From: Thalia democratica
Lineage: Eukaryota
Direction of reading: 5' to 3'
Length of the DNA stretch: 64,000 nt
NCBI GenBank assembly: GCA_965202585.1
Contig: OZ241827.1
Location: 97,898,001 to 97,962,000 of the forward strand
Part shown: positions 2,189-57,613 of the stretch, one piece after another
Layout: each line of letters begins with the position of its first letter
Numbering within the stretch: position 1 is the first letter of the stretch
Notes under the pieces: generated by a model
Databases searched by the model: none
What the model saw: the letters and a program-made list of their open reading frames with translations, nothing else
What the model was told of the DNA's origin: nothing
Program-made: the position numbers and the translations under genes

Positions 2189-2306
2189 AAACTGCAATTT
2201 GCAGTACAAACTTGGAAAATCAGCAGTGTGTACGCTATACACGATCAAGACTACTTTAAACACGAAACCATTTTAAAATGTTTACGGTTTGACAGTCGTT
2301 ACGTCA
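2189..2306 (+). other. Bipartite module (stem-loop then TTACGTCA)
   Basis: AAACTGC-AATTT-GCAGTACAAA, then TTACGTCA; anchor spacing (C of GTAC to last A of ACGTCA) 99. Confidence 0.85.
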
Positions 2307-2910
2307 TTATATAGTTTTTAAGTAATTTGATTCTGTAGAAATTTGATATTACTAATATTTGTTTACTACTCTTTGAAAAAAACAACATCAGCGTATGTTT
2401 AAGGTTGCATGTAATCTATATGTTACAAAAACATAAGTTTTAATAATTTTAATTGCTTACAATGATGTGAGATTTATAGAAACGGCAACATTATGTGATA
2501 CAAATACGTAGCAGTAACACTTCAGCAAAATATAGTAAGAATACAATTGAATAGTTTCCAAGTATTAATTCTTTCTATAAATATTTAAAAAATACTAAAT
2601 AAAGTATTGTGATTATGTTTTTACATCATTACTACTTGAAATGGGAAAGTACTATAAAAGGTAGACTTATATCTTTTAAAATTGTATTTCATGTCATGAC
2701 TTTGGTATATCTTACTATAATTTGTTTATTTAACAAAAGTAAAACATTACAACATGATACAGAAAACCATTTAAAGAGAAGTAGAATATGACTTTCTTAA
2801 GCAAAAATATGTTTATTTTATTCTGCAAAATACCATATATATATAAGTGAGTTACGTGACTTATACAATTTTTGTATAAAACCTATTATTTAACTCAACT
2901 ACAACAAGTC

Positions 2911-3464
2911 TGTAATGATATTAACATCTCATTTTCGTATTTTAAAGCGGATGTTGTAAACTGTTTTACGCAGATTTCGTGACGTGCTTCCAGTATTAAA
3001 AACAAACATTTTTATTATTTCAAGGAGTTAATTTCATTCCGACGAGTATATATCGGCGTTTGTCTTTCAAATACGCGTTAAAGTTAACTGCAAAGTTATT
3101 CCGCGGTATGATCTAGTTACGATTAAGTTCAACGTTTTACTTCAATTATCGAGAATCAAGAAAACGTCTACATAGCGGAGTTGATGTTAGTATTTATGTA
3201 ACTTTACGATTGTTGATATTTTTTATAGATTTTATTTGTGTCGTGATTTAATAGTTTCTTTCTTCAGAACTAAGAATTATTATTGAAAATAAATTAAATT
3301 GCATTTATTCAAAGTGTGTTTTATTCATAACTTAGGAAATAGTTTTGTAACTTATACTGTTTGTATATTATTTACTTCTCGTAAGTATAGCAGTCAGTAA
3401 GTTACTGGAGACCACGTAGTTAAGACATAAACATAAACATCATTAAAACAACCCTTTTGGTTCA
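2911..3464 (+). repeat. 5' LTR (TGT...TTCA)
   Basis: Direct repeat of 6754-7292 with canonical TG...CA ends; preceded by TSD AAGTC. Confidence 0.9.
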
Positions 3465-3538
3465 AGTGGAAACCACGCAGTGTCTTTTAAGGACCTTGAA
3501 TTTTCTGGTTAGGAATCTTTAAGCAGTCAACAGAATAA

Positions 3539-4285
3539 ATGCACACAAACAACAATGACGATATCAATTTTTATAATTTTCATCAAGCAGAGATGATGAA
3601 AGATAATGCTGAATTTTGTCCGTCAAACAGCATTCAACAACAATTTAGAAAATCAAGCGAAGTTAAGCAGCTAACAAATGAAGAAGTGTTAAGAGTTTTG
3701 CAAATGCAAATAAAAAAACTAAATAATAGATTAAAGCAGTCTAGATCACAACATTTCGAACGTGCGAAGCTAGAAAAACGCGAACCTTTTTACGATGATT
3801 ACGAAAAAAGTAATCAAAATAATTTAAACAACTTTAGCGACACATTTAAGGCGCAAAGACTAAGTAAAAAGTTTAAAAGGTTAGACTTTGTAAGAGAGCC
3901 TCGTGATATTATTAGTTTTTTTGAAGACGAAATGTTAAATGAAAATATTTCTAGTAATACAGAAAAGTATAAATTTTTAACTGGGTTTTGGCCGAGAGAA
4001 GAGTTGTCAGACTATTATAAAATGACAGAACGAGGTGAAAGAAATTACAGTTCTTTAAAAAATTTTTTTATTAAAAGGGACAATCATTTAGCTGAAATTT
4101 TAGATAAAGTTCCAATTTGGGATGATTGTACAAACTTTAATAAAATATTTGCTACAGCCGTTAGTTGGTCCAAATGTCCAGAGCAGGACAGAATTAAGTT
4201 TTTTCTTGCATACTTAATGCCCTTTTCGATTAAAGATAAGATTAGGGAACATTTTGATGAAAGCTTAGAAGTTTTTAAAAGATAA
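3539..4285 (+). CDS. Retrotransposon Gag-like protein, N-terminal part of an interrupted 582-codon frame
   Basis: 248-aa ORF just downstream of the LTR/PBS. Coiled-coil-like N-terminus, then a helical segment (EPRDIISFFEDEM.NENISSNTEKYKFL) reminiscent of Gypsy capsid N-terminal domains (recognised by eye, no HMM run). The frame stays open after the TAA at 4283-4285 through to 5287. Confidence 0.7.
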   Translation: MHTNNNDDINFYNFHQAEMMKDNAEFCPSNSIQQQFRKSSEVKQLTNEEVLRVLQMQIKKLNNRLKQSRSQHFERAKLEKREPFYDDYEKSNQNNLNNFSDTFKAQRLSKKFKRLDFVREPRDIISFFEDEMLNENISSNTEKYKFLTGFWPREELSDYYKMTERGERNYSSLKNFFIKRDNHLAEILDKVPIWDDCTNFNKIFATAVSWSKCPEQDRIKFFLAYLMPFSIKDKIREHFDESLEVFKR

Positions 4286-4522
4286 GGACAAGCCATATGG
4301 AATGCTTATAAAGAAAACGCATTAATACCTAAGCAAGTTAATTACGATAGACTACAGCAGTATGAGCAAAATCATTATAAGTCTAAAATAAATTACCATA
4401 AGCGAGTTTGTCGTAATAATCAACAAAATTTTTATTTAAGAGATAATGGTATTAATCATAATTACAATTATCGTCAACATAATCAAGATAGAGATAATCT
4501 TAAACCAAGAAAATCGTACAAT

Positions 4523-7292: not shown

Positions 7293-7916
7293 AAGTCTAA
7301 TAAGTTTAAAAAAATTTTTTTTTTAAGTTTTTTATTACATTATATTTATAAGTTCATTTAAAAATTTTAATGTTTTAAAATACTTACCTTTTCAAAAGTT
7401 TGCTTTTTTTGTAGAAGCTTGAAAAACTAAGTAAAGATATATAATAAACTTGCTAGACATTTTGTCAGCATAAAGTGAGTAAACTATAAAAGCGTCAAAC
7501 TACTTCAGCTTTTCTACCTTAGCTTACAAATTTTAAGCCGTTTCCGTGTAGCTTTGCTATTTTAGATTTTAATGCTTTATTATAAAAATGAAAGTTTTTG
7601 ATACTTTTGTGTAGATAGTATCAATAAAAACTATATTTTTTGCAAAAAAACATCAAAAATGTTTTAAAGTTAAAGTAAGTATTTACCAGAGTTTATATAA
7701 ACGACCTATAAGTTTGCTTATGTTATTGAAATTTCTTATTAATATATGTTTTTAATGATATTTGCAATCTTAAAACAAGTACGCAACGCGACGTTTGTAT
7801 GTTTTTGAGTTTTACTAAATATTAAATTTTAAATATGTGTATTATTAAAGTTATAATTTAAAAAAACATTGCAATTACATTTAGTTTTAATATAATTGAA
7901 ATCAATAAATTCATTC

Positions 7917-8034
7917 AAACTGCTTTGCGCAGTACAAATACAAATGTGAAACTCAGTGGTGAATCATAAATTTAGGACTGATTTTTATAGACAGTTTTTA
8001 CAAACAAATTTGCTAGAATTGCTTAACTACGTCA
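7917..8034 (+). other. Bipartite module
   Basis: AAACTGC-TTTGC-GCAGTACAAA ... CTACGTCA; spacing 99. Confidence 0.85.
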
Positions 8035-9890
8035 TCACGTCCTTAAGATATAAAATCAACTTTTTGTTTTAAAATTTAAGGTTGAGTAAAAAGAAATTTG
8101 ATTGTATAGAAATAATAAATAATAAACATTTTTGAATAGAGAAAAACATAATATTATAATTTATAATGCTTTACAGCCAGGTGGACATACATTAAACATA
8201 CCATCCAGTTTAAGATACTTTACAGTGTTTACACCAATATTAAGTTATGGTTGGGAAAATTCATGGGTAAAGGGATTATTTTAACTAGTAAAATTAAAAC
8301 TAATTTTAATAAACTAATTTAAATTAAAATGTAAATATACTGAAAGTAGTTACAAAATACAAGATGTATTTCTTTTAAATTGAATCGTTTTTCTGGTTTT
8401 AAGTAACTATTTAATCTTTTTAATTTGTACTAAATGACAAACTACATAAGTGAATATATTTTAATTAGAATTCTGTAGTATAAAATCAGCGAAAGATTTA
8501 TAATAGTAAAAGTTATATCACGCTATGACATTTTATAAGCGCTCAAAAATTTCGGTCTAAGGAATTGGTGTACAACTGAACCTTTCGGTTAACGAGTCGT
8601 ACACCACATGCTTATAAAGTTTCTTACGAGCTATTAAAAATAGTTTTTTTTATCATTTAAATATTACATCTTTAGTAATGAACAATCAGCTAAACGAAAA
8701 GAAACATAAAAGAAAACAAAACTAAACGAAAATTAACTGAATTTCGTGTTTAATTATGTACTATGAATTTTGTTTAGTAATATAAGAACTAAAAAATATA
8801 TATACAACTTTAAATTAACTTTCAAAAGTAGATAAACAACGCTAACAACAAACGTGTCAATACTTAAATTATAGGTTAAAACTTCTTTAAACAAAGTAAA
8901 ATGTAATACGCTGAAATACTTTTTACGAAAAGTTTATTATAAGTATTTTTGTTAAAATGATATTTTTTATTTTATTCAATAACTTAACTTGAACAGTGAA
9001 AACAATTTTACTTTTAAATAGTTTAATAAACTATTAATATTTTTTTATTTTAAAGAAGTGATTTTTACTTTAAATAAACTCAACTTTTATAAAATATGAA
9101 AATACATTTTGTAAAACTTATGCTTTTAATAAGTAAAAAGATACAAAACTATAATAATTTTAACAATAATGATATTATCAGCAATAACAAATTTCCTTCT
9201 TTTTCAGATTTAATCTTTATTTTTATATCTTTTAAATACTAGTTTAAGTCTAAAACTGTAATTATAGAAAGTGAGCAAAATTTGCAAACATAAAAAGAAG
9301 AATTTTTTCTTTAATTTCCTCAAAAAAATAAAAAAAAACTTTAGTTTGCTTAGAACTGTTAACTTAGCTTACTATTTAAATAATTTTAATTACTACTAGT
9401 ATTTTAGTACTATAAGTTTTAGATATATTTTGAAAAAAAAAGCAAAAACTAACATATTGAGAATTAAACAATAAATTTTTAGAGAGCCTTTATATAATTA
9501 AGATAAAACCAAAGTTATACTGAGTTTACTGCTTCAAAATAGTTTCTCATTTACACGATGATCACTAGCAAATAAACTAACAAGTTGCAATTTATAAACA
9601 CCCTATACAGTTATAGCTGAGTGATGAGAAGATTAAGTAATTAATTAGATAATTAAATGATTTTTTAAACAAATTACTCATATAATCTTACTGCTTTCCA
9701 TTAAAGATTTACATACTAGTTTTTTCTTTCATGTAAATTTGTAACTTACCAACAAAAGTACTTTACTGCATATGTATTTTCTGTGAAACAAAAATATATT
9801 TACTAATGTATTAATTCGGTTAATTACTAGTTTATTATTAGATTCTTTTTAGAGAAGCTGTCTAAATTGCTCGAGCGTACAAAATTGCAA

Positions 9891-10440: not shown

Positions 10441-11618
10441 AAGATTTTTTTTTACCTTACAACATATGTAACATACAACAATAATGTTGTAAGTAATACT
10501 TTAAAGTAATTGCAAAACCAAATTTTGAAAGGTACAAGAACAATATAAGTATGTCACTTATGTGAAAAATTTTTTATAATAAACCAATGTTAAAAAGGAT
10601 TTTTATAAATCACTTGTTGAATATCAATAAGTCTATAAATATGTACAGTAAGAGAATTACAAAACTTACGTTAAATAACAATCTTAGAATCTAACAAATA
10701 CAATTTTAATTATTTATACTAAAACTATATAACGACTTAATACGAATATTTAAGTTCATTTCTTGTAAACAATCTTTGCAACTACTGGTGGTTCTGTCAA
10801 CACAACTCCTGGCGGTTATCAACACAACTCCGTTTGTGCTAACAGGTTGTGACCAAACATCACATAAAAATATTTGGTCAGTCAGTTTTGATAATAGGTC
10901 ATAAAAGAGAAATGTGCTCTTATTCTCTTTATTCTCTTTTTCTAACTTTTTGTTTCAACAGACTTTTCCGGGTAAGAATTATAACTGCAATAAACTCTTA
11001 ATTTTCTTTTAAAAACAAAATGGTTTTCAAGTGAGACTTGGAATAGGCGTTAAAAGATCAAAAATTATTAATTTTCATCATGTATCTTTACAAAGCATAG
11101 AAACTTAAAACTTGGTAATTATTTCGCAGTTTAGATAACAATAACCAAAACTGTTACTAAACTATCATTTCTTTTTGTAAAGAAACAAGGCATTAAATTT
11201 AAGTTAAAATAAGTTATAACCTTAAAAAGTGTTACTTAGAATTACATTAAGTGTCCTTGACAAATATAGTTTTTTATTTTGAAACTTTATACGACACAAA
11301 ACAAAAATGTATCTAAATACAAAGTGTTATATGTTAGGAATACTTATCTTTAATGTCTTTGCTAACTTTCGTTTTTAAACTTGTGTTTAAACTAAATTGA
11401 ATGTTTCTTATAAATATATATAAAGAATTATTTTAAAAAGAACAGACAATAAAAAAACTGTTGTTTTAATGATGTAATTAACAAATCAACTTTTCATTTT
11501 TATTTATTGAACTGATATATCTTACCTATATCTTTAAATAATGTTAGCGAGAAATTCATTCATATTGTTTCTAAAATATCTGTAATTTTTAGTAGTTTTT
11601 TATTTAATGTTTTAAGAT

Positions 11619-11734
11619 AAACTGCTTTGCGCAGTACAAATATCAATAAGTTGGCAATATCAAAAGCTTAAGATTTGACTCGAAATTTATAAAAATATTA
11701 AAATAAAGTTTGCTATAATGATGTCGTTACGTCA
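11619..11734 (+). other. Bipartite module
   Basis: AAACTGC-TTTGC-GCAGTACAAA ... TTACGTCA; spacing 97. Confidence 0.85.
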
Positions 11735-12427
11735 TTACAAATTTTAAATAAAAGAATAATTTTTTTTAGCAAACTACATAGTAAAATAAAATAACTTTGA
11801 TTTTTTATAGAATAAACTATTACAAACTTGTATTATCTTTAATGCGAATAAAAAAGTTTTATTTGTAACTTTTATTTTAAATGATTGGCGAATAAACATA
11901 ACAAATATTTAAAAGTAATACAAAAATACGTGTTCAAACAATAAATATGAAGTAATAAACTGTTTAAACATTTTCAAAATTATAATTAACATGTTTCAAA
12001 ATACAAATTTCAATTAACTTTTAGTTATGTTTATTATTCAGTAAATTTAAAATCACTAACTATGTGGTTTAAACTTTAGAATAGTTTCTACCACTTTTGA
12101 CTGAAATCTTACTAATTTTATAAAAACTTTGTCCTAGTTTGTTGTTTCAACGTCTAAATAGTTATTATTTATTTTTTATTATTTTTGTAAAATTAAAGTT
12201 TCTTAATTGTAAAATTACTGGCTGATAAAATAACTGGTATAGTTGTATAAAAAGTTTCAAAACTTTTACAACTACTATTTATTATTCAAAAAAAAAAGAT
12301 AAGTACTGATTTCTCAGTAACTTGGTTAAAACTAATTGAAACTAGTTTGAAATAGTTTAGAAATTTTTGTTTTTATAAACCAATATTTCACATATATTGA
12401 TTAAGGTTATTGTAAAAAATAAAATAA

Positions 12428-14086: not shown

Positions 14087-17000
14087 AAGCTCTGGGATTG
14101 ATAGGATACACTGTAAGCCAAGCGTTTTAAACTTTTATAATAAACTTAATCTATCTGCTAGTTTTGGTAAGAATAATCAGTCTTCTTTAAAAAGTTATAT
14201 TAACATTAATATTATTAATTTAATGATTTAGTACAAATAAAGTATATATGTAATAAACAAATCACAAATAAAAGGATATAAAACTGATGAAATTTCTATA
14301 AAAATCTTAAACATATTTACAAAAATATGCCAAAGTTATTTGTGGCAGTTATTTTATTACGTCATTAAAGTTTTTACGTTTCTACCATGTATTTCATGAA
14401 TAGTTTTAATAGTATATCTAAGTTTCGTTTTTGATAATTGTTTTTATTCAATTACAGAAAGAATTCTCTTAGTAAGTACGAACTAAGTTTTGTTGTTTTT
14501 AATTGAAAAAAATTTTGCTTATCGCAATAAAAATTTTGGTACATTTAGAAATGTTTTTTAGTTTTTAGTTTATAAACACTTCTTTGATGTTACTCTTAAA
14601 ATAAACTATTATAAAAAACTTCTTTGCTTAAGATTAACTAATAAAAATGACTTTTGATATTAAAAACTTTACCTTTGGTTTATAGTAGATAAGTATTAAT
14701 ATATGGATAAATTAAAAGCCGTTAGTTTTGAGTTGCAAATAAGATTCATGAAAAACATGCTAAATACTAAGTAATTATCTAATTAAAATGCTATTTTTAT
14801 AATTTTTTCTTGATTTAAAAATTAAAAAAATATTTTAGATGATTAATAAACTTTTTATTATTCAATAATTTAAAATAGCTATTTTCTTTCTGTGACAAAC
14901 TAACAGTTTTTTTAACACCTAGGGTTACTGAAACTTTATATTATTACAAAGAGATGTTTTAGTTTGAGATACATACTTGAAATTATTACTCATTAGCTAT
15001 TAGGGATAACCTTTAAAAAAATTTACACATGATAAATTAATGTTTTTAAAAAAATCTAAAGATACTAATTAAACATTTCGTCTTTAAATTTAAGTTCTTT
15101 GTCCACTAAACCTAAAATATTTAAGTAACCAACTGTTATGAACGATGTAAAAACCTAAACTGTCTATACTGAGTTAGTAATACTATTTTGTAGTAACTCT
15201 CTTGAAAAAATAACATATAGACATGAAACGACAAAATTGTATTAACAGTTTTTAGAAATTTATTATTATAAAATACAGTGATTTGTACCAATTGAAAGCT
15301 TATGTGACAATAAATTAATAAACTTATTTTAAATGATCTATTGTACTAGTTTGATTAGATAATATTTAATTTATAACAATAATAACTTTTGTTAAAACAA
15401 TTTAAAAACAAATTTGTTTAATGTATAAAGTCGAAACCATATTGAGTATAATTTTTACTTACATTAATATTATTACTTGTTTTAATAATTCATAAAAAAA
15501 AAAATTCGAACGTACTTATTTTGTTATAATGTAATTAAAACACGTTTGTTGAAAAAAATTAGGTTTTAAAAATGTTTGGTAGACTACACAAGAATGAACT
15601 TATTTTCATTTTTAATTTTGTATTTAACATAATATTAACATAATCCTAATTTAAATTAAATATCTTATAAACTGATGTCTACAGTATAAATAACAAAAAA
15701 CGATGAAACAAAACTAGTTGTATCAAAACTACCTCTGTTTATATAGAAAAATGCAAAAGAATGAAATGCGGGAATTACCTAGTTTCATCAACACAAGTTT
15801 TACAGGTAAAACTATTTATCGTTATTTTCATAAAAAAGTAGTAAGAATAACAACGTTAGGTTATTTCGTTAGTTTTCTTTATATTTTGAATTTTAGAGCT
15901 GTTTTATATTTTTAAATATGCTAGTACGATAGATTAATTTAAATTATTCTTTATATGTGCTTATCTGTTTAATAAATGCTTTAGCAGTAAAAATTATCAT
16001 CTATGTTTTTAATTGGGTACAAAATGTTCACATGAGTCATAGCTTTATTATCAAAGAGTAAAAGTATATTTAAAATTAAAACACGACTAAAAAATTTACT
16101 TCATCATAGAAAGTTTTTAGTTTTAACTAAATATTACTAAACTTTTCAATAACCACATAATTTTTACTTTTTTCAAAATTAAGTCTTTTTAAAATAAAGC
16201 CTATCGTTTTTTGTTAGAGCGATCTGTGTGACATTACTAAATAATATTGACTTAATTTATACTGTTAGTAATAACATCAGCTAAATTAAAAAAATATAGT
16301 TATAAACAACTACAATTTAATAAAATTATTTATAATGTAAGTCTGAAGAATATTGCCATCAACTTTCAGCTTTACATGTTTATATAAAGACGTTTAAACA
16401 GAAAATTCAATTTAAAATACCTACCCTTCTTTGCTCTTCTTTAAATTAAATCTCGAAACGTGTGATAAAAAAAAATAAAATAAAAAATAAGACGTATAGA
16501 GAAATAATACTAGGCAATTGAAATTTGATCTAAACTAAAAAACAGATACTTCTTAACAGTTAAAAAATGTTGAATATAAACATAAATCTAAAAATATATA
16601 AATTTTTAACTTGAGACTTGTAATCACTTTTTACATTTAATCAAAGTAAAGTAACTAAAACAACAGTTTTTGGTTAACATATTATTAATGATTATGTTGA
16701 TATCAAATTTTATTAACCTTTGTTTTGGCTAATTACTTCAAGTTGTATGAAAAATAGTGTATTATATAAAAAAAATAGCTTAGCTAATCAAAGCAAGCGA
16801 CTAATAAACTAAAAGAACGTGTTTATTTTTGCTGATAAATTTCTAACATAAAGTTATCTTATATTGAAACTTTGTACAAATAACATACCATAGCATTTTT
16901 TAATTTAAGTTTTTAGATCATGCTAAGAATACTTATGATTAAAATGAGTTAGTAAATAATTTAAACTAAAACATTGTCAGCTATAGTTAATCAAATTAAA

Positions 17001-17483
17001 AAGTTAAAACGAAATTAAAGCAACCTTTTTTAACCTGCTAAGTAAAATACTTATGAAATATTTTAGTGATGTAAAAACTTAGAGCTGTTATGTATTTAAT
17101 AAAGTTGTTCATAAACTTCGCTATGGTTTTGAATAAAACTTTTAAAATTCACTAAGTTATAGAAAACTTCATATTTTAAAGTTGATGGTATATTGCTCTT
17201 CAAGATAACTACTAAAGTTAGTAAAGTTTAGTTTTTTACATAAGTTAGTAAAGGTAGTATATAATTATAAACTGATTTGTAATATGCTCAACTAACTTTT
17301 TACTAATGTGTTTAACAAATAACTTTATTTCAATATATCAATAAAAGCAATATTAAATATAAACAAAATACTTTAAAAGATTGTAGTTCAAAAGTAAAAT
17401 AAAAATTGTAATGATTTTCAATGAAGTATTGTATTGATGTTATGTGTTGAAGTATCAATGAAACTCATTCAAAATTTAAAGTT

Positions 17484-17599
17484 AAACTGCTTTTTGCAGT
17501 ACAAATACAAGTATCTGAGCAAAGGAAGAGATTTAATTCTATCACTCTTTCTATAAAAAACTTGACAAAAAAGTTTGCTAGATTAATTTCGTTACGTCA
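17484..17599 (+). other. Bipartite module
   Basis: AAACTGC-TTTTT-GCAGTACAAA ... TTACGTCA; spacing 97. Confidence 0.85.
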
Positions 17600-18093
17600 A
17601 TACGACTCTTTGAGATAAAACCAGTTTTTTGTATAAAAGATTAAACCTATGATTAAGAAAGTACAAAACTATTTTTGAATTGTGTAATTTATATTTAAGG
17701 CAGTATTAAGTTTTTTTAAGAACATCACTTGTGTAAAATGATCAATCAAAAATTCTAAAAACACAATAAAATATTTCATAAAGCTTTGATTTTTACTTAA
17801 AAATTACTAGTAGAAATTTGGATTATTAATCATTTGTATAATATTTTAGTTACTTTTTATTATACGTAGCTTAGCTTTTTCATTGATAAATTTTGGAAGA
17901 TGAATTTTATTTTTATTTTAAAGCATTTTAATAATTGTCAGAAACATCCAAAACTCAAGCAATTTTAACCTGATTTTTGTACTGAATCGTTTAAAACCTC
18001 ACTAATTAAGGGAATGGAAGAAGTTTCTTAAGATTTGAAAAAATAGTTTAAACTCTCCGTAACTGAAATTTTAAGTTAAAATAATAAAATTTT

Positions 18094-18203
18094 AAACTGC
18101 TTTGTGCAGTACAAACATATTGAAGTATATCACCACTTCATTTGAAAAATATTACGATTTTACAGAAAAAAAAAAGTTCTTCGTGAACTTTGTTGTTACA
18201 TAA
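18094..18203 (+). other. Bipartite module, degenerate CRE half
   Basis: AAACTGC-TTTGT-GCAGTACAAA ... TTACATAA; spacing 91. Confidence 0.6.
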
Positions 18204-19145
18204 TTACGATGTTTCATCAAGAAAGTATTTTGTAAAATATCAACTACTATGTTAAACTCCTAGTAAGTTTTGTTTGCAGTTAATATTAAAATTGTCTTTG
18301 AATAAAACATTAAGTTATTTTTACGTTTAGTAATACTCTTCGGATTAAAATGCATTTTCAACATTCGAATTTTATGACAGTACATTTTGATTTACGAAAC
18401 ACTATTTAGTCGGAGTAATGTCGTTAAATAGTTAATAGTAAAATTACAATTACATTTTTACAAACTTTGAGTTTGAAATGATTAGATTAATTAATTAAAC
18501 TTAGTAAGGTTATGACTAAAAAGTGTTAGTGATTTTTTTTGAATTTATACGTATCTCCTAAGCTTAAACCAAATTATCTTAAATTTAGCACCATTACAAC
18601 GATAAGTTAATGACAACATAAATATGAACTTGATACAATAGCTCATACAGTTGAAGTCTACACTCAAAATGTAGTACACCCTTATTTTATTCGTTTAAAG
18701 ATGTTGTTACTAGTTTTTATACTGTATACTTTTATTTTAATTAACAGTTATATATGGATATAAAAAGTCGCTTGTTTTCAATATTTACTAAGTTTATGAA
18801 GCACTTATATTTTAGTCTACGCTTACAACTTAGTACATGAAAGTTAGCAAGTTGTGCAAAAATAGTAAAGATTTTTTTTGAAATAAAACTAGTTCTTTAA
18901 AATATTTATAATCATATAAGATTCATAATTTAAAAATAACTAGATTTTACTACTGAAATTTGATAAGGTGTTAAAAATATTACAATTTATGAAAAATCAT
19001 TATGAACAATAATTTATGAATTTTATTTACCAGTCTATTGTAAACAAACTTACTAATGTAAACAAGTTTATTTATTTATCTAATGATTAAGTATTAAAAA
19101 AAATTGTACCCAGAAATATTGAACTAATACTAAAAAAAACAGTTT

Positions 19146-42115: not shown

Positions 42116-42234
42116 TGACGTAGCCATCACAGTTCTAGAAATTTATGCAGTTTATTAAAAATAAACTTTATTGAATTTGAAAAACTGAATGCTGAAGATT
42201 ACGTTCAAAGTTTGTACCACATAAGAAGTGGCTT
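42116..42234 (-). other. Bipartite module, ACCAC/GTGG type
   Basis: TGACGTAG ... TTTGT-ACCAC-ATAAGAA-GTGG-CTT; spacing 98. Confidence 0.8.
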
Positions 42235-44626
42235 AAAAGTAATCTAAAAATTAAATTGAGATAGCAAGCACACTTGATAAAAGAATTAGAATAATTAATT
42301 CTCATACAGTTTTTACTGCTATAAATACATAAGTTTAATATTTTAAAACAAAAACGAGATACACATGATTTACAAAATTTAATAAGTTTCGCTAAAGTTT
42401 AAAAAATGATGTCAGTTAATAAAATTATTAGTACTTTAGATTTTAAAGTTTTTCCGGATTTTATATTCAATTATAAATGAACAAAGCGATATTAGATAAG
42501 TAATTATGAAATATAAGCTCCATCATAAATACCCAATAATGATAAAACTATCATGTAAATAAAACAAGCTCGAAAGACTTAACTTAAGTGATATAATCAA
42601 GTTAATTAAAAATTAAAAAATATATAAACACTAGAATTTATTTCTACACTACTAATACTTAAAACCACAAACAAAAATAGAAAGTTTAATATAGTTTAAA
42701 ATAACTGAAACAATAAAAAAGTATAAATTGATAAATCAGACAAGAACATAAAACTAAACATGAAAAGCGACAGACAAAAAATACGCAATCATAACCAAAA
42801 ACTTTTTATCAGCAAAATTGAAACTAATTAAATACTAAAACAAAGAAAAATTAAACCGTTCATACGAGCAGTTTAATATATTTTTTAAATACAGTTTAAA
42901 ACATTTTTATAATACAACCTTTCCAAACTTATCAAAATGCATAAACTCTTAAGATAATAAGATCAGCGTATTTTTCAAACAAAATTTGCTGTGAAAAAAG
43001 CCTGCATTATTACTACGTCATACTATTCCCAAAAAATACAATTTCAAAATTTCTATATAACATTGTTAATAAACTTTAGCTTAACTAATGAGTATACGAG
43101 GTAGTATATGTCATACACGAAACGTTCGTATAAACTTATTGTTTTTTAAATAGACAAATAAATATATGAATTTAAAAAACAATTGGTTTACTGTTCTAAA
43201 AAATGTGTGTATATATGACTTTTCTTCTAACTTTGGTACTTTCAAATTAATTATCTTTTAGTATTATGTGTATTAAAATTTATTTAGTAAGAATACTTTT
43301 ACTTTAAATCCATATTAAATAAAAATTAAATTTACCCTAATTAAGGACTATAATACTTTTTTATCTTTAGTAATATTTTTAGAATGTAAAACTGTTTATA
43401 GAATTGAATATTAAGTTTGTTTAAATTAATTTTAATTGAATATTTGAAAAAACTTTTCAGTTTATTAAAACCTTTTTTTATGATTGAATTGTATGATTTT
43501 TGTGATTTTTGTGATTGAATTGATTATGATTTAAATTGTATGATTGAATATGTATGAATTCAAAAAATAATTTATTTTTTCAAATTTTGTTATAACTTTC
43601 TTATAAGTTTTACATTTTAGTAAAAAAGCAAGTTTTTTCAATAATTACATTCTTCAGTAAGTTAGAAAATACGAACAATACGAACTAAAGAGTAATAATT
43701 TATGAATTGATAATACAAGCCTGATAACCGTAAACACATTCAGTTATATTTACTATAACACCCTAGTTTTGAAGAAAGTCTTTTTCATTTGAAGCCATTT
43801 TGTACTGCAATACAGTTCTATGCTTAAGTATAACAACCATAAATATAATTATAATATAATGTTATTGTGTATATATAGACAAATCACTAACTATCAAACA
43901 AGTTATTGTATACATTTTGATAGTATTAAAATTATGTATTTAAGATTTATAATTCTATACCGATAAAGCAAAATAATTTTTAAAAACTGTTACCTGCTTT
44001 CGTTAATTTCAATTTTTGTCAGTCGTTTGTATCTAATTTCAGCTATTCTATTAGTTTTGCAGCCAATTTTTACTATAAAAACTTAGTCATTCTTTCAAAA
44101 TAGATTAAAGCATGTTTTTACATTCTTAACTATTTAAGTAATCATAGTTTATCATACTTTTTGTAACCGATAACATAAAATAAAGTTTTATTTATGCATC
44201 ACAGAATTAAAATAAACTATACTTTTTTAATTGAATGTTATAAAATGGAGAATGTTGTAAGTCAGATGGTAATTTAGTATATTTTAATACTAATTTTGCT
44301 AGAATTGTTAGATCATAGTATTGATTTGCTGTATATAAACCATAGTAGTATAAATTTTACAACCAGATAAATAGAGAGATAATTTAAACTTGAAGTGATT
44401 AAAAAATAAATCAACTATTGTAACTATACAACCTATTTATTCAGGAATTAAGATAACCTGTTCTTAAACTAGTCTTAAACTAGGTAGTATAAAAGTTCCA
44501 TGTCTGTCCATCTGTTTATAAATCATGCTAGAATTAAATACAAGCAAGTACAAGTTAGTACATTTTCATCTTAATTAATGATTTAATTTGAAATTAAAAA
44601 TGGATATATTACATGTGAATGCGTAA

Positions 44627-44743
44627 TGACGTAACGACATTATTTAAGCAAACATTTTTATAAAATGTTCTGTAAAAAATCTGATACTTTTATATGTTTC
44701 GTTTAAGCTCATTTACTTTTATTTTTAGTGCGGAAATCAGTTT
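44627..44743 (-). other. Bipartite module, degenerate stem
   Basis: TGACGTAA ... TTTTT-AGTGC-GGAAA-TCAGT-TT; spacing 98. Confidence 0.6.
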
Positions 44744-45042
44744 AATGAAAACTTTTAACTAAAACTAAAACAAGTTTTAATTAGTTTGAAAAAAAATACA
44801 GTTTGTACTTTATTTCCTTATTACAAACTTTAAAAAAATAAGTGTTCTTATCTATTTAAGATAGCAATAGTTGAGATATACAAATTGAATGAAGAAAGAC
44901 AAAATATTATGTTATTTTGTCACATAAATTAGATAAATATTTAAGCATAATATTAAACACAAGAAAAACTAAATAATTTTATAATATCTAGTACCTACCA
45001 AGTTACACTCATAGAAGATATTTTGTAATGTGAAAAATGTGA

Positions 45043-45157
45043 TGACGTAAGAACAATATTACCGTTAACTTACTTAAATTTTCTATATATCTAGCGACTG
45101 TTTTAAAGTTTTGTGTAAATGTTCATTTGAATATTTGTACTCTGTTGTGAGCAGTTT
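45043..45157 (-). other. Bipartite module
   Basis: TGACGTAA ... TTTGT-ACTCTGTTGTGA-GCAGT-TT; spacing 94. Confidence 0.75.
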
Positions 45158-45369
45158 ATATTGGTTACAATAAAACTGGTCAAAAGACTAATTGGGTGTG
45201 CTTGGTTATTTTTATCATCGGATAAAAAGCAATAGTTATCTATTATTTAAGATTTAGTTTATAACATTAAAAGTAGTTTTGAAATGTTCAAATTGTAATG
45301 ACACAAACATAAATTTACACCAAAAGTAATATGTATATTTTTCTATTTAAACAGTGATATGTATATATA

Positions 45370-46311: not shown

Positions 46312-46426
46312 TGTATTCTTTGCGCATCACAAATACAATGCCGTTTTACTGATGCAAAATTTAAATCTATAAGAGCATTTATAAAAAAATCTTAAAAATA
46401 AAGCATATTTATCGATCGTTACGTCA
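46312..46426 (+). other. Bipartite module, GCATCACAAATA variant
   Basis: GTATTC-TTTGC-GCATCACAAATA ... TTACGTCA; spacing 96. Confidence 0.65.
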
Positions 46427-46949
46427 TTTAAATGTTTAGGTAACTGAATTAGCTTTGTAGGTTTTCTACAAAATTACTAATAACTTGAATAAATTACTTG
46501 AGTTTAATATTATGCTGAAGTTAAATAAAGAACAACTTTAATAGAGAAACCCACTCAATTGTTGTGCCTTGTTATCTATAGTAGTATTGATATCTAGTAA
46601 TACTAAGTCTAGGGTAAAGTAATGATTATGTCAAATCCCGAAAGTAACGACACACTCAGATTAAGGCCCAAACGTAAACGTTCTAGGGTAAATGGACCTT
46701 TGTTGTTGTTGTGTCACCAACACTCTATGGTTTCAATGGCGACCTCGGACGGTTTAAATGGCGTTCTCGAAAAAATGAATTGACAATCATTTGATAAACA
46801 GTTGATTGAATAAAGTTTCATAGGGGGTCACATCGATCAAAATGCCATAAGGGGATCTAAACAAATTGGCATGAGGGGTGAAAAATAAAATGATTATGCT
46901 ATTACGACACAGCTAGCTGATAGTTAGAGGACTTTTATATAGCTGAGCT

Positions 46950-47300: not shown

Positions 47301-47536
47301 ATTTAAGCCATGAAATTTAATATAAGGCTAATCGAATTCGATTTTTATTCAGATATAACAAGCGATTCTAATTATTTTTTTTACAATAATTTATAAAATT
47401 CACAAAGTTGTTCCTTTTTTTATTTATAAATATATTGAAATCTTTATAGGACAAATGGAGCTTAATTTATATTTTATTTTCTAGTCTAGCTTTATATAGT
47501 TTGCAATTATTAACTTTATAGTTTAAGTTTATTTTA

Positions 47537-47651
47537 AAACCGCTTTAGGCAGTACAAATATCTTCATCAAGAATCAAGTCACATTTGTAAGATTATTAAA
47601 CTTAAATTGGAAAACTTCAAATCGTTTTGCGATAGTTTATTTATTACGTAA
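47537..47651 (+). other. Bipartite module
   Basis: AAACCGC-TTTAG-GCAGTACAAA ... TTACGTAA; spacing 96. Confidence 0.8.
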
Positions 47652-47979
47652 CTAAAGTATTTACAAACTAAAACACTTGTAAAACAAATTTTTAATATTC
47701 AAAATAATTTATTTGTGCATACTACTTAAAAAATACTCGGCACAACCTAAACTAATGATAGCTGATTAACTTTTTACTACCTAAATAAGTTATACATCTA
47801 CTTAACTTTTAGAATGTTTGTTAAACTAAAATTGTTAGTAAGTTGTGCAAAAAATTAACTAATTAGTTTGAATTTTTTAAATAAGGAATATGTACACTGT
47901 AACTTAATTTAAAAATTTAGTTGAATTGTATAAATTAAGTAAATAAAAAAAAATGGTTACCAACAAAATTGCACAATTT

Positions 47980-48096
47980 AAACTGCTATATGCAGTACAA
48001 AAATCAGCGGAATGAATAGCGATTAGTTATTAAAATTCTAACTTGATTTAAGCTTAGGCTTACAAACTGTTTTACAGAAATTTTGTTGCTACGTCA
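47980..48096 (+). other. Bipartite module
   Basis: AAACTGC-TATAT-GCAGTACAAA ... CTACGTCA; spacing 98. Confidence 0.85.
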
Positions 48097-48919
48097 TTGA
48101 GTTAAATGTGTAAATAAAACACTTAATGTTACATGAAATTACTTTAAAAATATTTCTCAAATTACGCTAAACCAGATCTAATATTACTGTATAAATACTT
48201 GTAACTTAAGTTATATCATTGGAAAAAACATTATACCAAAAAGTGTAAACAAATGAGAATCGTTGCAGAACGTCCTAAACATTAACGTTAAGCTGGTTCC
48301 AAGTGGCGACACGACAACCGAAAGATTTTTTATATTAGTTAGGTCGTAAAACCAATTATTTTTTTTTTTAATTTATTATCAATAATGATAACTAAATTTT
48401 CTTTTTTTTTTTATTAGAAACAGTTTTTTATAAGACAATTAACTTTTCAAAAGAAAATTTATTACGAAATATAAAACGGTGTACAAACATAACTTTGCCT
48501 TTTGAAGAAATTTGTTTGCTTTTTTATAACGACCGTTTTTTGTTAATTTATAATATGCGCTTAAATACAAATTAACATGAAAATTATGGTAAACCGAAAC
48601 TTTTAAATTTCATAAGTTCATATTTTTGTAGACAACAAGACTTTTAACTGCTCAGGTTTAGTCAATGTCGAAGGGATGCACGATAATTCTAATTCTGATA
48701 TTTAAATCTGAAAATTAGGTGTTTTATTTTTTTATAAATGGCCGCAACTTATAAATAAAGATATTCAAAAAAACGTATGTAGGTTTAATTAATACTCCTC
48801 ATTATTTTTATTTTATTTTGCCAAGCAAACAAATAAAAGGTAATATTTTATTTATTTAGCGTGTTATTACTAGTTAAGGCTTAGTTCGATTTATTGCTAG
48901 TTATGTTATATTTATTTTT

Positions 48920-49039
48920 AATCCACAAATTTTTGTGGTACAAATTTCGTGTGTACTTGTGTAAGTAACATCCATCAAATTAAGTTACATTATATCTTAA
49001 ATGATTATGGAAAGTGATCGAACTTTTGATACTACGTCA
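48920..49039 (+). other. Bipartite module, CCAC/GTGG type
   Basis: CCAC-AAATTTTT-GTGGTACAAA ... CTACGTCA; spacing 98. Confidence 0.8.
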
Positions 49040-49219
49040 TTATTTGTCTTTAATATAATACTAACTGTAAAAAATAAACTTATTTGAAAACTTCAACCAA
49101 TGAATAAAAATAAGTATAATATATTAGTAAGTTAATTAATTGTTAGTTAGGTTACAAAATGTTCAAACTAATACATTTTTGAAAAACAAATTAAATTTAC
49201 TTGTGCTAAATTTTTCTTA

Positions 49220-49222
<3 letters not shown>

Positions 49223-49252: not shown

Positions 49253-49258
<6 letters not shown>

Positions 49259-49313
49259 AGGTTATTGTTTAAACGTAAACACTTTCAACTGAGCCCACTT
49301 GAAGGGCTTTTAA

Positions 49314-49833: not shown

Positions 49834-50557
49834 ATATATATGTATATATATATCAAACGATGTTGATCGAATATGTTTACGTTTAGATATAGCTTCATGT
49901 TTAATTAAGTTTAATTCATGTTTTATTAAGATATTAAGTTATTATGTAAAAGTACTTACAAACAAAGCACATTTACTTAATTACGACTACATTATTTACA
50001 AATATTTTTGTTTTGTTTTTTTTAAGAATTTTGTTACATCAATAAAATATGACGAAGCGTTTTTATAAGTAAAACATGAATTATTCAAAACTCAAAGTTG
50101 TCTTGAATGAATAAAGTACAAACAAGCTACACGTATTTCAATGATTTTAGCTAAATTAACACTAGGATTAGCTAAAGTGGTATGCTAGTTGTTTGTTGAG
50201 TTTAACTATAATCTTTGTGTTATGTGCTGCAACTTTAAAACTAAGAAAATTTTAGCAAAAACTCTTAACATTTTGCAAATTTATCATAAATAAAGCTATT
50301 AATACAAATATAATGTAAATCAAGGTTCAAAAGATATTTTTAAACAAGGTACTATGTTTTAAATACAATTATAAAACTTATCGATGAAAAGTAAATTTTA
50401 AAGTTAACATTTGTTAATACTTTACAGATAATACAATAAATTTCTTTTCGTATATTCGTTATGCTATTTTAAAAGTAAAAACATATTATTTTGACAAGTT
50501 TTTAAAGTAGGTTTTTTAGTTTGAATGCCTTATGGTATTCGGTCTATTAGAGATTTT

Positions 50558-50675
50558 AAAATGCTTCACGCAGTACAAATTTCTAAAAAGCAAAGATGTG
50601 AAGTATTTGTAACACGTATAATAATATATACACAAGTTTAGTATAAAAAATTACAAACTTTAAACTGTTACGTCA
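50558..50675 (+). other. Bipartite module
   Basis: AAAATGC-TTCAC-GCAGTACAAA ... TTACGTCA; spacing 99. Confidence 0.85.
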
Positions 50676-51310
50676 CTGAAACTTAGATGTAACAAAAAAT
50701 TCTTATAAAGTTTATAAGTACATGCAAATTCTAGTTCACTTAGACTTCATTCATGTTTGAAATTGGAATAAATTAGATTTTTAAATTTTAACTAGCTATG
50801 ATGCATAATATTTATAAGCTACATGATGTTATTACAGCTTGTTAGACAAACTTTAAGGTTACCAATAAAAAATCTGTGTGATTTAAAAACGAACTGATAT
50901 TAGATTAATAAAACCGTTTAGAAATTATTATCGACTGTTAAAGAATTGTTTAGTAAACAATAAATTAGCAAAAATTGCAGTGCGTAAAAAAAAAGCCTTA
51001 GATAAATTCCCAGATAAATCAGTAAAACCAAAATTAAAATTAAAAAATATCTCTAAAAAAAATTAGTATTTAGTTTACGAACAAACGTTTTCAATTTTTT
51101 AAAGGTTAATTATTCGTATATAAGTAACAAAAAAAAAAATTAGTAGTTATAAGATTATTACAAAAAATAGTAATTTTTTTTATAAAATACATGTAAAACT
51201 TTTAAGGGGTAATTAACATTGTTATCAAAAAAATGAAAAATTGTCTATATTCTATTATTTTCCTCGTTATTTTATCACTGTTAAGTAGAATACTTCAAGT
51301 TTATAGAAAT

Positions 51311-51428
51311 TGATATGATTAACATCAGTGTTAAAGCAAATATCTTTGCATAGTATACATAAATCATAGAAACTCAAGTTATATTATTCAATAGTATTCG
51401 GAAATATTTGTACTGCCAAAAGTAGTAT
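51311..51428 (-). other. Bipartite module with CpG-decayed CRE
   Basis: TGATAT (TGACGT after two transitions) ... TTTGT-ACTGC-CAAAA-GTAGT; spacing 99. Confidence 0.6.
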
Positions 51429-51533
51429 TAATAATTTATAATCCAGTTGAAGATTTAAGAATTTAAAAAAAACTCACTACAGAATTCTATTTAGAAACAA
51501 AAAGTAGTTTTTAACATATATTATATAATTATC

Positions 51534-54419: not shown

Positions 54420-55580
54420 AGACAATCCACCAACCAGTAGTGCATTTGACTCATCAACTTTATTTTGGTGACTTTAATTAACTTTTTTACTGCACTTTAT
54501 CCAGCATTGTTTACAGGCAGAACACTCAATATATCTCATGTTTTTACTGCTCCAAACAAATTTATCAGTTGATTTATTACATATACCACAAGTTATTTTA
54601 CCACTTGGTTTTTGTGTGGTTTTCTTTAAGGATTTGTATACATTTGGTGTATATAATCCACTAACTAGAAGTGCATTTGACTCATCAGCATAACTTTGGT
54701 GACTTTGATAATCTTTTTTACAGGACTTTATCCAGCATTATTTACAGGCAGAACACTCATTATACCTCATATTTTTACTGCTCCAAACAAATTTATCAGT
54801 TGATTTATTACATATACCACAAGTTATTTTACCACTTGGTTTTTGTGTGGTTTTCTTTGAGGATTTATATGAGAAAACTGAGGCTGTAACAGCGGGTTTT
54901 GACATTGCATCACGTGCCATCTCTTTACCTTCTATAAAACCGATTGTCTCATTGATATTTTTCTCATCTAGATTTTCCCATCCTAGTACCTCTTTACGGA
55001 TATCCTCATCAGCTAAACCTGTTACCATGAAATCTTTTAGAATTATGTCTGTAAAATCTATCATTTGATTACAGCCATCCTTTGGGCATTTACATGTGTA
55101 CGAGCATGTACTGGCTTTTCTCTTTAAACGTGCAGCAAATGATCTAGTGTTTTCAGTCGAATCCTGTCTTGCACTAAGAAAGTCTGATCGTCGTACAACA
55201 ACTGAAACAGGAATAACTGCAAGCTGCTTGATCATCCTTAAAAGCTCTTGCTCACTTAAATTTACTACATCTTCATGACCCTTCAGAAGAGCATCGCCTA
55301 TATCTTCCTCACAGCACTGGTACAGTTGACGGCCTTTTTCTACTTCTGTCATCTCCATGTTATCTTTGAAAATAGTCCCATTTTGTACAAATATATTCCA
55401 ACCCTCTTCATTGCACTCTGTCCCTATTCAAGGACGGTCCATCTTTTGAGGCTTTGGTTTTGAAGAATTTGCATAAATGTGAACGTTGTTGTGAATGATA
55501 AGCAAAGAAGCAACTACAGAAGCATCGACGTCTGGTGTTTCATATGTGCAACTCTCAAGAGGGCATTTAATCACAGGCAT
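54420..55580 (-). pseudogene. Gypsy gag pseudogene
   Basis: Starts MPVIKCPLESCTYET...LLIIHNNVH (C2H2-like), then has a stop and a frameshift. Continues as ORF 55358-54738 with RRSDFLSARQDSTENTRSFAARLKRKASTC and LKDFMVTGLADEDIRKEVL, then a duplicated Cys-rich tail. Confidence 0.85.
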
Positions 55581-56164
55581 TGTTGATTTAATTTAGCTAG
55601 ACTTTATCATAAATAAATATATCTTTCTTGGTTGATTTTATTCACAAACTAATTACAAGAATGATAAAGTCTGTATACAAAACATAATTAAAACAAGGTA
55701 AATACTTATACAATACTGATTTCAAACTGAAAGTAAACAGATTCAAACTATGTGACAAACATAAATTTTGTATTTGTACTACATAGAATTTGAAAATATC
55801 TTAATCACAATTAGCAGCTCATTTTAGTTAAGCTGTAATTGAGATTTTGACAAACAGCTCACTTTAAAATACTAAGATACTCTAAAAACGATAAATACAA
55901 CAAAACTTTAAAAGTTCACAATAAGAATTTTTGGAATTCTATTGTTACGTTCACGGTTTTACATGTACTATTTTTATTTTAATACAATCAAAATGTATAG
56001 TTTTGCATGCATTTTATTCTCTGCTATAACAAATTAAAACTTTTATATTGTTTGTCAGTGCTAGAACACAAGTACAAATCGTAAACGATAAGCTAAAAAA
56101 ATTTTTCAACCTAGCTTATCGCTTTGATGTAAACCTAAAAAAAAATTACTGGAAATCTCCTTAA

Positions 56165-56283
56165 TGACGTGAAAACAGTAAACCCGTACACTTTTAGTTA
56201 AAATATTAGTATAAATTTTTGCTGACTTTAAAAGTATGTGTAGCATTTCGTTCTCAAGTATTTGTACCAGAGATAATTATGTT
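56165..56283 (-). other. Bipartite module, distal stem arm lost
   Basis: TGACGTGA ... TATTTGTACCAG; spacing 99. Confidence 0.6.
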
Positions 56284-57494
56284 TATAAAAAAGCTGATTT
56301 GTGCAAACAATTGCGTTATTTGTTTATTCTGTCAGTTGTAAAACGTTGCTAAGAGTTAAAAAAAAATATTTAACTGCTGTTTTTACGTTCATTGTAATTG
56401 TTATTTTGGCATTTTGTTTATTAAATGTGTATAAGTGTGTTTTCCATTTTACGACAAAACAGTTAAGCTAAAATTAACAAAAAACAGTTATGATTTGCAA
56501 AAAGACTTTTTCAAATGATCCTTTTTATTTTCATATACGGCAATCTTATACGGCATCTATTCAGACTGATAAATATTTTTTTCAATATATATATGAAAAT
56601 TTGTTAATTACCATTATGACATCAAATACTTTGCTAAGATATTTCTAGATAAACTCTTAATAGTATAAGACGCTTATAGGTTTTTATCTACAACAGATAT
56701 ATTTGGGTTTAAATGATATATAAAAACTAATGTTCGTTTAATATATATTTATTTTGTTCTGTTACAGTTCAAGTTATTTATTAATGTTATTCTAAAATTT
56801 ATTGTTTTGTTTTTAATAATCCTTAATAAATCGCTCAATTTAAAATAGTAATATTAAAACCGTTTTTTAATGTGTTTTATAAATTTATTTGATTCAAGTT
56901 TTGTTTGTGTTATTTTTTAATTTCTATTTTTTGTTCGGTTTACTAATTTGATTAAAATGTTCCAAAAAATCTTATTTTTCTAAACATACAAATTAGTTCA
57001 TTTTAATTAACATTTAGTAATTTTAATAAGAGCTGCTTATACAAAGTAAACTTAATAAAATAACACATATTTACTTCAACTGCGTTTTTTTTCCTTTATT
57101 ACTAACTTATTGTTTCAGTAAACTATATCATTATAAAAAACATAGTTACAAACCCATATAACTAAATCAAAACAAACCTTTATTATACGTTAATAGAGTA
57201 TATACTAATAGTTGTAGTTTTTCCATGTAAAGAATACTAACTAAGCACTACAAAATTTATAATTTCTAATATTTAAATATAAATACATAAATATTTTAGC
57301 AAAAAATATTATCGTAATGACGTAAGTGTAGAACTCCTAAAAAATATTTAAAAACATTAATATATTAATTGCAATAATTTCAATATTTGAGTTATTGATT
57401 GAAAGTATTTTTTTTAAATTAACTTATATTGATAAAAGTAATAGCATATTTATATGTTTGTTTAGTACAAGTTTTATTCACAAAACCCTAGTAG

Positions 57495-57613
57495 TGACGT
57501 AGGATTAAAATTCCAGTTATTTTTTTAAAAGTGTTTTATTTATATTCATACTCAGTGATACAATATCACTGTGCCTTTCGGACTAAAATTTTCACCACAA
57601 AAACAGTGGTTTT
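57495..57613 (-). other. Bipartite module, ACCAC/GTGGT type
   Basis: TGACGTAG ... TTTC-ACCAC-AAAAACA-GTGGT-TT; spacing 97. Confidence 0.8.

Follow-up and report, generated by a model that had tools for sequence, protein, structure and literature searches.

A repeated promoter-like and hairpin module in Thalia democratica: a possible bank of individually promoted, guide-like small RNAs

What keeps the same short motifs, at the same distance from one another, in some thirty places along a stretch of DNA whose copies otherwise cannot be aligned? This question is raised by a 64-kb window from Thalia democratica (GenBank assembly GCA_965202585.1, contig OZ241827.1, positions 97,898,001 to 97,962,000 of the forward strand), referred to here, at its full length, as “the window.” A preliminary description, made from the sequence, had noted a recurring module with two parts: a short stem-loop and, ~98 bp away, a site resembling a cyclic AMP response element (CRE). 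Here, we describe the anatomy of the module, the pattern of its conservation, and the explanations that might account for it. We conclude that the module is strongly non-random and selectively maintained, and that its function is probably exerted at the RNA level. The explanation that we favor, and to which we give about an even chance, is that each module is a small nuclear RNA (snRNA)-type external promoter followed by an RNA of ~45–55 nt, so that, taken together, the modules would make up a bank of guide-like small RNAs, each with a promoter of its own. Throughout, coordinates are those of the whole window, and the strand given for a module is that of the predicted RNA, read from TGACGTA toward the hairpin.

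The window has a G+C content of 20–30%. Between 7.3 and 54 kb, there is no open reading frame (ORF) of ≥120 aa, and a ciliate-type genetic code rescues ORFs in the window no better than chance. A tRNA search of the window found none, and no Rfam family matched the window at gathering thresholds. With the cut-off relaxed to E values up to 10, and with the window and one module as queries, there was no U7, spliced-leader (SL), small nucleolar RNA or Y-RNA match to any module.

Both motifs of the module recur far more often than in shuffled sequence. The hairpin box, GCAGTACAAA with ≤1 mismatch, occurs 31 times in the window, compared with 6.0 ± 2.6 times in shuffles; YTACGTCA, which contains the CRE-like core on the opposite strand, occurs 27 times, compared with 2.8 ± 1.7. 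Among 27 hand-curated hairpin boxes, 22 have a TACGTCA (≤1 mismatch) at a start-to-start distance of 94–100 bp, most often 97 bp (six boxes), 98 bp (five) or 96 bp (four), and less often 95, 94 or 100 bp (two each); one further curated box has TACGTCA at 88 bp. The spaced pair GTACAAA-N84–94-TACGTCA was observed 13 times against an expectation of 0.00 (none in 100 shuffles). The recurrence of the motifs and their fixed spacing, as first described, are thus borne out. An nhmmer profile of the 148-bp module, trained on 20 good copies, detects 31 copies at E<0.01 between 2180 and 57616, 11 of them outside the training set. Some of these are visibly decayed, with box 1 (see below) reduced to TGATGAAAC, TTATGTAAC or TGATTAAC, or with a broken stem. 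Units are 0.4–6 kb apart (mean, 1.8 kb), with 20 copies in one orientation and 11 in the opposite one.

The module has more parts than its two most visible motifs. Read from TGACGTA, the order is box 1 (RTGACGTARC), box 2 (YWGYAAAC, or GTTTRC on the opposite strand) at ~+19, and a TATA box at +43 to +46. The exemplar is the copy at 17472..17614 (−; nhmmer E=7e-24), in which box 1 lies at 17591..17601 (−; ATTGACGTAAC), box 2 at 17573..17580 (−; TAGCAAAC), and a near-palindromic TATA box, TTTCTATAAAAA, which we assign to neither strand, at 17548..17559. TGACGTA(A/G) is a CRE-type half-palindrome; it is present in at least 22 copies, and the full CRE palindrome in one. By its sequence, box 1 is a putative CRE/ATF bZIP core (TGACGTCA or TGACGTAA). 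The distance to TATA is 43–46 bp from box 1 and about 17–20 bp from box 2. The TATA 4-mer starts inside a single 4-bp bin in 13 of 27 copies and falls inside a 20-bp span in 16 of 27, for which the background probability is 0.20 (binomial p=1e-5). A weak TTTAAA-like motif follows 18–24 bp past the start of TATA (17532..17537, −, in the exemplar, the predicted start region).

Past TTTAAA comes a stretch of ~26 bp that is fixed in length but has no conserved sequence (17506..17531, −, in the exemplar, the predicted unique 5′ part of the RNA). Its G+C content of 0.28–0.35 is above that of the flanks (~0.20), and T outnumbers A on the TGACGTA-to-hairpin strand. The best matches of these unique stretches to the window have 4–8 mismatches of 24, no improvement on control segments. 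The stretch ends at the hairpin box, with TATA and TTTGTA 50–51 bp apart in 12 of 19 copies. The spacer and flanks had been described as largely unalignable between copies. Segmental duplications apart, this holds for the flanks beyond a module of ~200 bp, but the spacer contains TATA, the GTTTRC block and the weak TTTAAA.

The hairpin box, which we call the handle, consists of RTTTGTA, a 5-bp stem (A plus CTGC/GCAG or CCAC/GTGG) and TTT(A/T)AA, with nothing conserved beyond; in the exemplar, it is TTTGTA + CTGC-loop-GCAG + TTTAAC at 17481..17505 (−). There are two types of stem, with loops of the lengths given in the preliminary description: in the CTGC/GCAG class, the loop is 5 nt in 14 of 15 copies and 3 nt in one, and in the CCAC/GTGG class, loops are 6–9 nt. 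On the TGACGTA strand, loops are rich in A. In an alignment fitted with a covariance model, standard pairs make up 93% of stem cells, changes on both sides are seen at two of the five pairs, and none of 500 shuffles matches the covariation score; shifted stem registers are only 12–53% paired. The two stem classes also differ in box 1 (TGACGTAG vs TGACGTAAC), so they represent two lineages, and compensation amounts to about one event per pair rather than many. A U-rich run follows the stem directly, and ≥4 T, as expected of a type-3 RNA polymerase III (Pol III) terminator, are found after the stem in 8 of 24 copies.

Compensated changes together with a variable loop length favor base pairing over base-specific reading by a protein, and loops ranging from 3 to 9 nt fit poorly with a rigid protein dimer site. 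This bears on two proposals. First, the hairpin box had been taken for a proximal sequence element (PSE), with the CRE-like box as a distal element. Because the stem covaries and its loop varies in length, the hairpin is more likely a transcribed 3′ hairpin, and boxes 1 and 2, lying upstream of TATA, make a better PSE equivalent. Second, the module might act as DNA, as a platform for a bZIP-type factor, TBP and a protein that binds hairpins or cruciforms, with a role in, for example, insulation, recombination, replication or a centromere-like function. The strand symmetry of all the motifs, a hairpin that is equally stable on both strands, and the CRE-type half-palindrome of box 1 would suit such a platform. 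However, the stem and its loops point to base pairing, 31 copies in 55 kb are far too dense for origins or a point centromere, and the spacer is 65–80% A+T rather than >90% and includes a stretch of raised G+C. We consider a DNA-level platform very unlikely. The more specific layout of a point centromere (CDEI-II-III), of which there is one per chromosome with a center of >90% A+T, was rejected on the same two counts, with 31 copies in 55 kb and a spacer G+C of 0.2–0.35.

The distribution of similarity between copies indicates how the module has been kept. With stringent scoring, colinear similarity is confined to ~200 bp around the motifs; beyond the module, similarity is shared only among members of segmental duplications. 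Per-column pairwise identity is ~0.9 at TGACGTA and 0.2–0.3 in the unique stretch, which is no higher than the random expectation for its composition. At ≥90% identity, the read depth of the DNA runs is not that of a high-copy region; together with the unrelated surroundings of the copies, this means that the copies are old and single. Spacers are saturated with change while ~90% of the motifs is kept, which argues for selection on the motifs in place and not for passive transposon decay. Judged from these comparisons, the motifs must be held by selection where they lie, in agreement with the preliminary description, whose alternative of copies aligning as one ordinary transposon family does not match what we find. 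Loss of CpG, considered as a further sign of selection, is an argument without force here, with an observed/expected ratio of 0.92–0.96.

The same pattern bears on whether the module is a selfish element or its relic, i.e., a non-autonomous transposon, a retroelement or the end of a Helitron or Helentron, with the motifs serving its own propagation. In favor of this, the many copies are spread over both strands and some have decayed; Helitrons characteristically have a hairpin close to one end; and the window contains a hammerhead (45402–45473), a sign of small non-coding retroelements. Conserved termini are lacking, however, as are target-site duplications, and neither strand has CTRR past the hairpin. 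Beyond the motifs, the copies bear no relation to one another; depth is not that of a high-copy region, and young copies are not seen. After insertion, the motifs of such an element should decay like the spacer, and they have not. The duplications that are seen are segmental, and an external promoter, being absent from its own transcript, cannot be spread by retro-copying. A selfish origin is therefore quite unlikely in our estimation. A Helitron or Helentron 3′ end, in which a hairpin stands ~10 nt before a CTRR terminus, was rejected in particular, since CTRR, a sharp common end and near-identical copies were not found and the depth is not that of a high-copy family. The alternatives proposed in the preliminary description, namely point centromeres, origins and Helentron ends, thus fail: copies are too dense, the spacer has the wrong composition and termini are lacking.

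How, then, might the conserved parts work together? The U6-type promoter has a PSE, a gap of ~17–20 bp to TATA and a start ~25 bp further on. By analogy, each module would be a self-contained snRNA or type-3 transcription unit, read from the CRE-like box to the hairpin. Box 1 and box 2, ~19 bp apart, would form a bipartite PSE equivalent upstream of TATA, and transcription would start ~22–30 bp past TATA, near the weak TTTAAA. The predicted RNA would comprise a ~26-nt copy-specific 5′ segment, an invariant RUUUGUA, a stem of 5 bp whose loop (5–9 nt) is A-rich, and a short U-rich tail, at which the transcript would end or be processed. The constant 3′ hairpin could serve as a protein-binding or stabilizing handle, and the unique 5′ segment could act as a guide by pairing with a target. 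The RNA itself, the direction and start of its transcription, its polymerase and its function as a guide are inferred. What commends this scheme is that it gives a role to each conserved piece and accounts for the fixed length and the composition of the stretch that is not conserved.

Several observations weigh against it. Three sequencing runs behave as DNA, with continuous coverage and haplotype variants. The predicted start has no clear preference for U, the nucleotide with which mature 21-nt piRNAs of nematodes begin, and no initiator is clearly conserved there. The T-run after the stem is only 3–5 long, weak for a Pol III terminator, and no conserved 3′ box lies further downstream of the stem. 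Apart from paralogs, the unique stretches have no match or complement in the window. Nor is there a clear sign that the unique stretch changes faster than its surroundings in duplicated pairs of modules: with only two pairs to compare, one has 54% identity in the stretch vs ~65% in the flanks, and the other 81% vs 82%. As for direction, the hairpin folds with −4.5 and −4.7 kcal/mol on the two strands, which expresses no strand preference; wobble pairs are split, with two copies for the proposed strand and one for the opposite; and the ACGT core, TATA, TTTAAA and the hairpin are all palindromic or nearly so. Because the motifs are near-palindromic and the hairpin is symmetric, the proposed direction draws on geometry and composition only.

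The opposite reading of the module accordingly deserves attention. It would make the hairpin box the upstream element, with TATA next and a start near GTTTGC, 10–16 bp before TACGTCA, giving an RNA with TACGTCAYYAC near its 5′ end that runs into non-conserved DNA. TATA reads equally well on that strand (TATAAAAA, TATAGAAA), and GTTTRC lies 21–27 bp past it. Past TACGTCA, there is a weak ATAAAA at ~20 bp and a T-run at ~33 bp, and in one subfamily, similarity on this side extends slightly farther and takes in an E-box-like block ~130 bp on. Set against this, the opposite direction leaves no role for the covarying stem with its variable loop, for the fixed-length stretch of raised G+C, or for the 50–51 bp between TATA and the hairpin box; and past TACGTCAYYAC, composition is flank-like and nothing is conserved in most copies. 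In addition, a sequencing run from the same sample, X3, lacks the sampled words of 17400–19400, which carries little weight as the kind of run is uncertain. We regard the opposite direction as unlikely.

Transcription toward the hairpin invites comparison with several known systems. Two reports describe nematode piRNA (Piwi-interacting RNA) genes as thousands of tiny, individually promoted, sequence-unrelated units (PMC6436959, PMC11262695). The modules resemble type-I piRNA (21U-RNA) genes in being tiny units with unrelated bodies, each preceded at a fixed distance by a motif of its own, and in being clustered, on both strands, in DNA poor in protein-coding genes; 31 units with unrelated bodies in 55 kb make up a cluster of this kind. 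The unique stretch, at ~26 nt, is also close to the short capped piRNA precursor, given as ~28 nt (PMC6436959, PMC11262695). There are also clear differences: modules have two upstream boxes and a TATA box, a constant hairpin after the unique stretch, and a spacing of ~1.8 kb. The nematode Ruby motif, CTGTTTCA, which lies ~40 bp upstream of the small RNA in nematodes, has three matches in the window vs 2.3 expected, none of them inside a module, which speaks against membership of the nematode piRNA genes. The architecture of the modules (unrelated bodies, conserved motifs and fixed geometry) supports the core of the earlier proposal, a cluster of individually promoted small-RNA mini-genes, but not its original assignment of parts.

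A second comparison is with the U7 snRNA gene. The modules carry RUUUGUA followed by a 5-bp stem, and RUUUGUA may be a counterpart of the U7 Sm site, which we take to be AAUUUGUCUAG. The U7 snRNA has a 5′ antisense segment, an Sm site and a 3′ hairpin, and is made from a PSE promoter (PMC5112044). The short predicted RNA, the order of its parts and the proposed external PSE-type promoter would all be shared with the U7 gene. The 5′ segment of the modules, in contrast, varies from copy to copy (identity of 0.2–0.3), whereas that of U7 is single and conserved; there is no conserved segment complementary to the histone downstream element, as the 5′ stretch differs in each copy. The module stem has only 5 bp and adjoins the U-rich motif, and the Rfam U7 model has no match at E values up to 10 in the window or the one module searched.

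Third, type-3 Pol III promoters, such as those of U6 and 7SK, have a PSE-like element, TATA ~20 bp on, a start ~25 bp on, a short transcript and a terminal T-run, all of which would have a likeness in the module as we read it. The fixed spacing of PSE and TATA is reproduced by the geometry of the module if its boxes, as we propose, act as a PSE. The module T-run differs in being only 3–5 long and, to our knowledge, the box sequences are unlike any known PSE. Finally, and by analogy only, CRISPR repeat-spacer arrays also have many units per locus, in each of which a constant hairpin-forming repeat is joined to a unique segment whose length is fixed. The modules differ in belonging to a eukaryote, in having a promoter for each unit rather than one leader transcript, and in lying 0.4–6 kb apart, and the window showed no protein genes associated with them.

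Two other identities were rejected. The histone mRNA 3′ stem-loop (Histone3) has a 6-bp stem and a 4-nt loop. Its sole, weak match in the window, at 17099–17145, is outside the modules, whose stems have 5 bp and loops of 5–9 nt. A spliced-leader RNA gene was set aside because the module has no conserved segment of common-leader length on either strand.

More tentatively, the array could belong to a library of guide RNAs, hundreds in number and encoded in the germline. Each would have an snRNA-type promoter to itself and a unique 5′ segment of ~26 nt, and all would share a 3′ hairpin handle bound by one effector, such as a ring of the Sm/LSm type, an Argonaute/Piwi protein or a nuclease. We regard this extension as possible rather than probable. 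If it were true, it would be a programmable RNA-guided system unlike piRNA clusters, nematode 21U genes or CRISPR, and it would imply an effector protein not yet known. Individually promoted small-RNA mini-genes at this scale are known only in nematodes, and full-text searches of the literature brought up no description of these motifs, nor of such arrays outside nematodes. The modules would thus be a second, independently built system, in a marine invertebrate, set apart by its promoter boxes, by TATA and by the constant handle that the hairpin forms; encoding guide libraries in this way would have evolved more than once. Scans of metagenomes for relatives of the module gave no matches and then three chance matches, which lacked TGACGTA. 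The fixed geometry makes specific predictions: the strand, a 5′ end 22–30 bp past TATA, and an RNA of ~45–55 nt or a processed ~26-nt product. Even if the RNA explanation fails, a selected element of 150 bp with ~31 copies per 55 kb needs explaining.

The remaining copies vary in how well each part is kept. On the − strand, modules without marked variation are found at 2180..2320 (nhmmer E=8e-17; spacing 98), 7905..8049 (E=3e-19; spacing 98), 11608..11749 (E=7e-21; spacing 96), 20591..20728 (E=5e-11), 21587..21730 (E=1e-21), 47968..48102 (E=8e-16) and 50548..50684 (E=8e-15). The copy at 19134..19278 (−; E=2e-18) has a U-G pair in its stem on the − strand. Other stems occur on both strands: the CCAC class is represented on the + strand at 24516..24652 (CCAC/GTGG with a 9-nt loop; E=1e-10), 32731..32869 (with the full palindrome TGACGTCA as box 1; E=5e-7), 42102..42242 (E=1e-12) and 57480..57616 (E=9e-15), and on the − strand at 48922..49053 (8-nt loop; E=1e-11), while 31356..31499 (+; E=4e-16) has a CCGC/GCAG stem.

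In other copies, it is the hairpin that has changed. It is weakened at 22528..22667 (−; E=9e-15) and 44618..44753 (+; E=4e-18), altered at 45029..45166 (+; E=2e-14; a paralog of the 22528..22667 copy), decayed at 46316..46441 (−; E=4e-12), and disrupted at 25303..25438 (−; spacing 88; E=1e-4). The copy at 56154..56268 (+; E=6e-7), which was missing from the preliminary description, has TGACGTG and a degraded hairpin. Box 1 is the variant TTACGTA at 47527..47665 (−; E=4e-15) and is mutated to TGACGGT at 35997..36132 (−; E=3e-6), the inverted-duplicate partner of the 42102..42242 copy. A variant at 25792..25912 (+; E=2e-4; hairpin 27 bits) combines TGACGTT with a shorter spacer, and a decaying module at 26362..26487 (+; E=4e-3) has TGACGGA and CCAC/CTGG.

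Further decay has left parts of modules. At 15661..15805 (−; E=3e-6; hairpin model 22 bits), box 1 is down to TGATGAAAC and TATA and the hairpin are retained; at 18086..18214 (−; E=7e-8; hairpin 50 bits), the hairpin is intact and box 1 has decayed to TTATGTAAC. The promoter half is recognized at 14312..14378 (−; E=6e-4), where the module is partial or decayed and the hairpin box is displaced. Decayed modules also lie at 22289..22403 (−; E=1e-3) and at 22859..22950 (−; TTAAGTCA; E=1e-4), the latter a paralog of the 44618..44753 copy. Hairpin handles with a decayed promoter remain at 28763..28803 (+; E=0.16), 43793..43833 (+) and 51393..51441 (+; E=1e-3; hairpin 42 bits); in the last of these, the promoter reads TGATTAAC, with box 2 and TATA still recognizable.

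Several of these relationships reflect the structure of the window itself. Nested inverted duplications are centered near 39.1 kb (35600–42500 and, more loosely, 20100–46300), with inner arms 85–91% identical and outer segments 70–79% identical. Modules on the arms are mirror-image paralogs, so the family grows by segmental duplication of DNA. New copies would arise by local tandem and inverted duplication, followed by divergence or decay. Over 17300–23200, runs X1, X2 and X4 yield at least two haplotype-like sets of contigs, ~5–10% apart, and divergence from a second labelled organism (B) is ~5% over 2.2 kb.

The E-box-like block of one module subfamily, ACAGGTGRACAGACAT, is found at approximately 8160–8185, 11860–11885, 21845–21870 and 44480–44505. 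Its distance from TACGTCA is ~130 bp, in the direction opposite to the hairpin. If transcription runs toward the hairpin, this places it ~200 bp before the predicted start, where it could be a distal enhancer.

The window also contains elements of other kinds. The hammerhead ribozyme at 45402–45473 (−), which scores 36.8 bits (E=1e-5 for the window as a whole), belongs to the HH9 type; its core is CCGATGAG...CGAAAC, and its helix III is minimal and palindromic. It sits in a repeat at 45261–45706, of which there is an inverted copy at 30226–30673, and a long near-perfect hairpin at 45656–45718 lies ~190 nt upstream of it. This ~450-bp element looks like a retrozyme or a Penelope-type unit; it is placed where the paralogous arm (20.1–20.7 kb) runs into a module. 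A near-perfect foldback at 49311–49836 has arms that are 96–100% complementary and a 93-bp loop, with related copies at 36399–36646 and 41570–41861; each arm contains TACGTCA in a sequence context unlike that of the module.

Pieces of long terminal repeat (LTR) retroelements lie at the ends of the window; among them is a Gag-like ORF that contains a cold-shock domain. One LTR retroelement, at 2911–7293, has 555-bp direct repeats (2911–3465 and 6754–7293) that are 95% identical, and ORFs at 3539–4285 and 4286–5287 that share one frame with a single stop between them, the second having the Pfam cold-shock domain (CSD; E=1e-19). A repeat pair of 157 bp occupies 1–157 and 2768–2924. Two tandem arrays were also found. 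One, at 58657–63558, has a period of ~1485–1494 bp and at least 3.5 units that are 86–88% identical, with no ORF and no Rfam match; the other, at 23768–23902, has a period of 18 bp and ~7 units with the core AAAGTGACGCACCATGCT.

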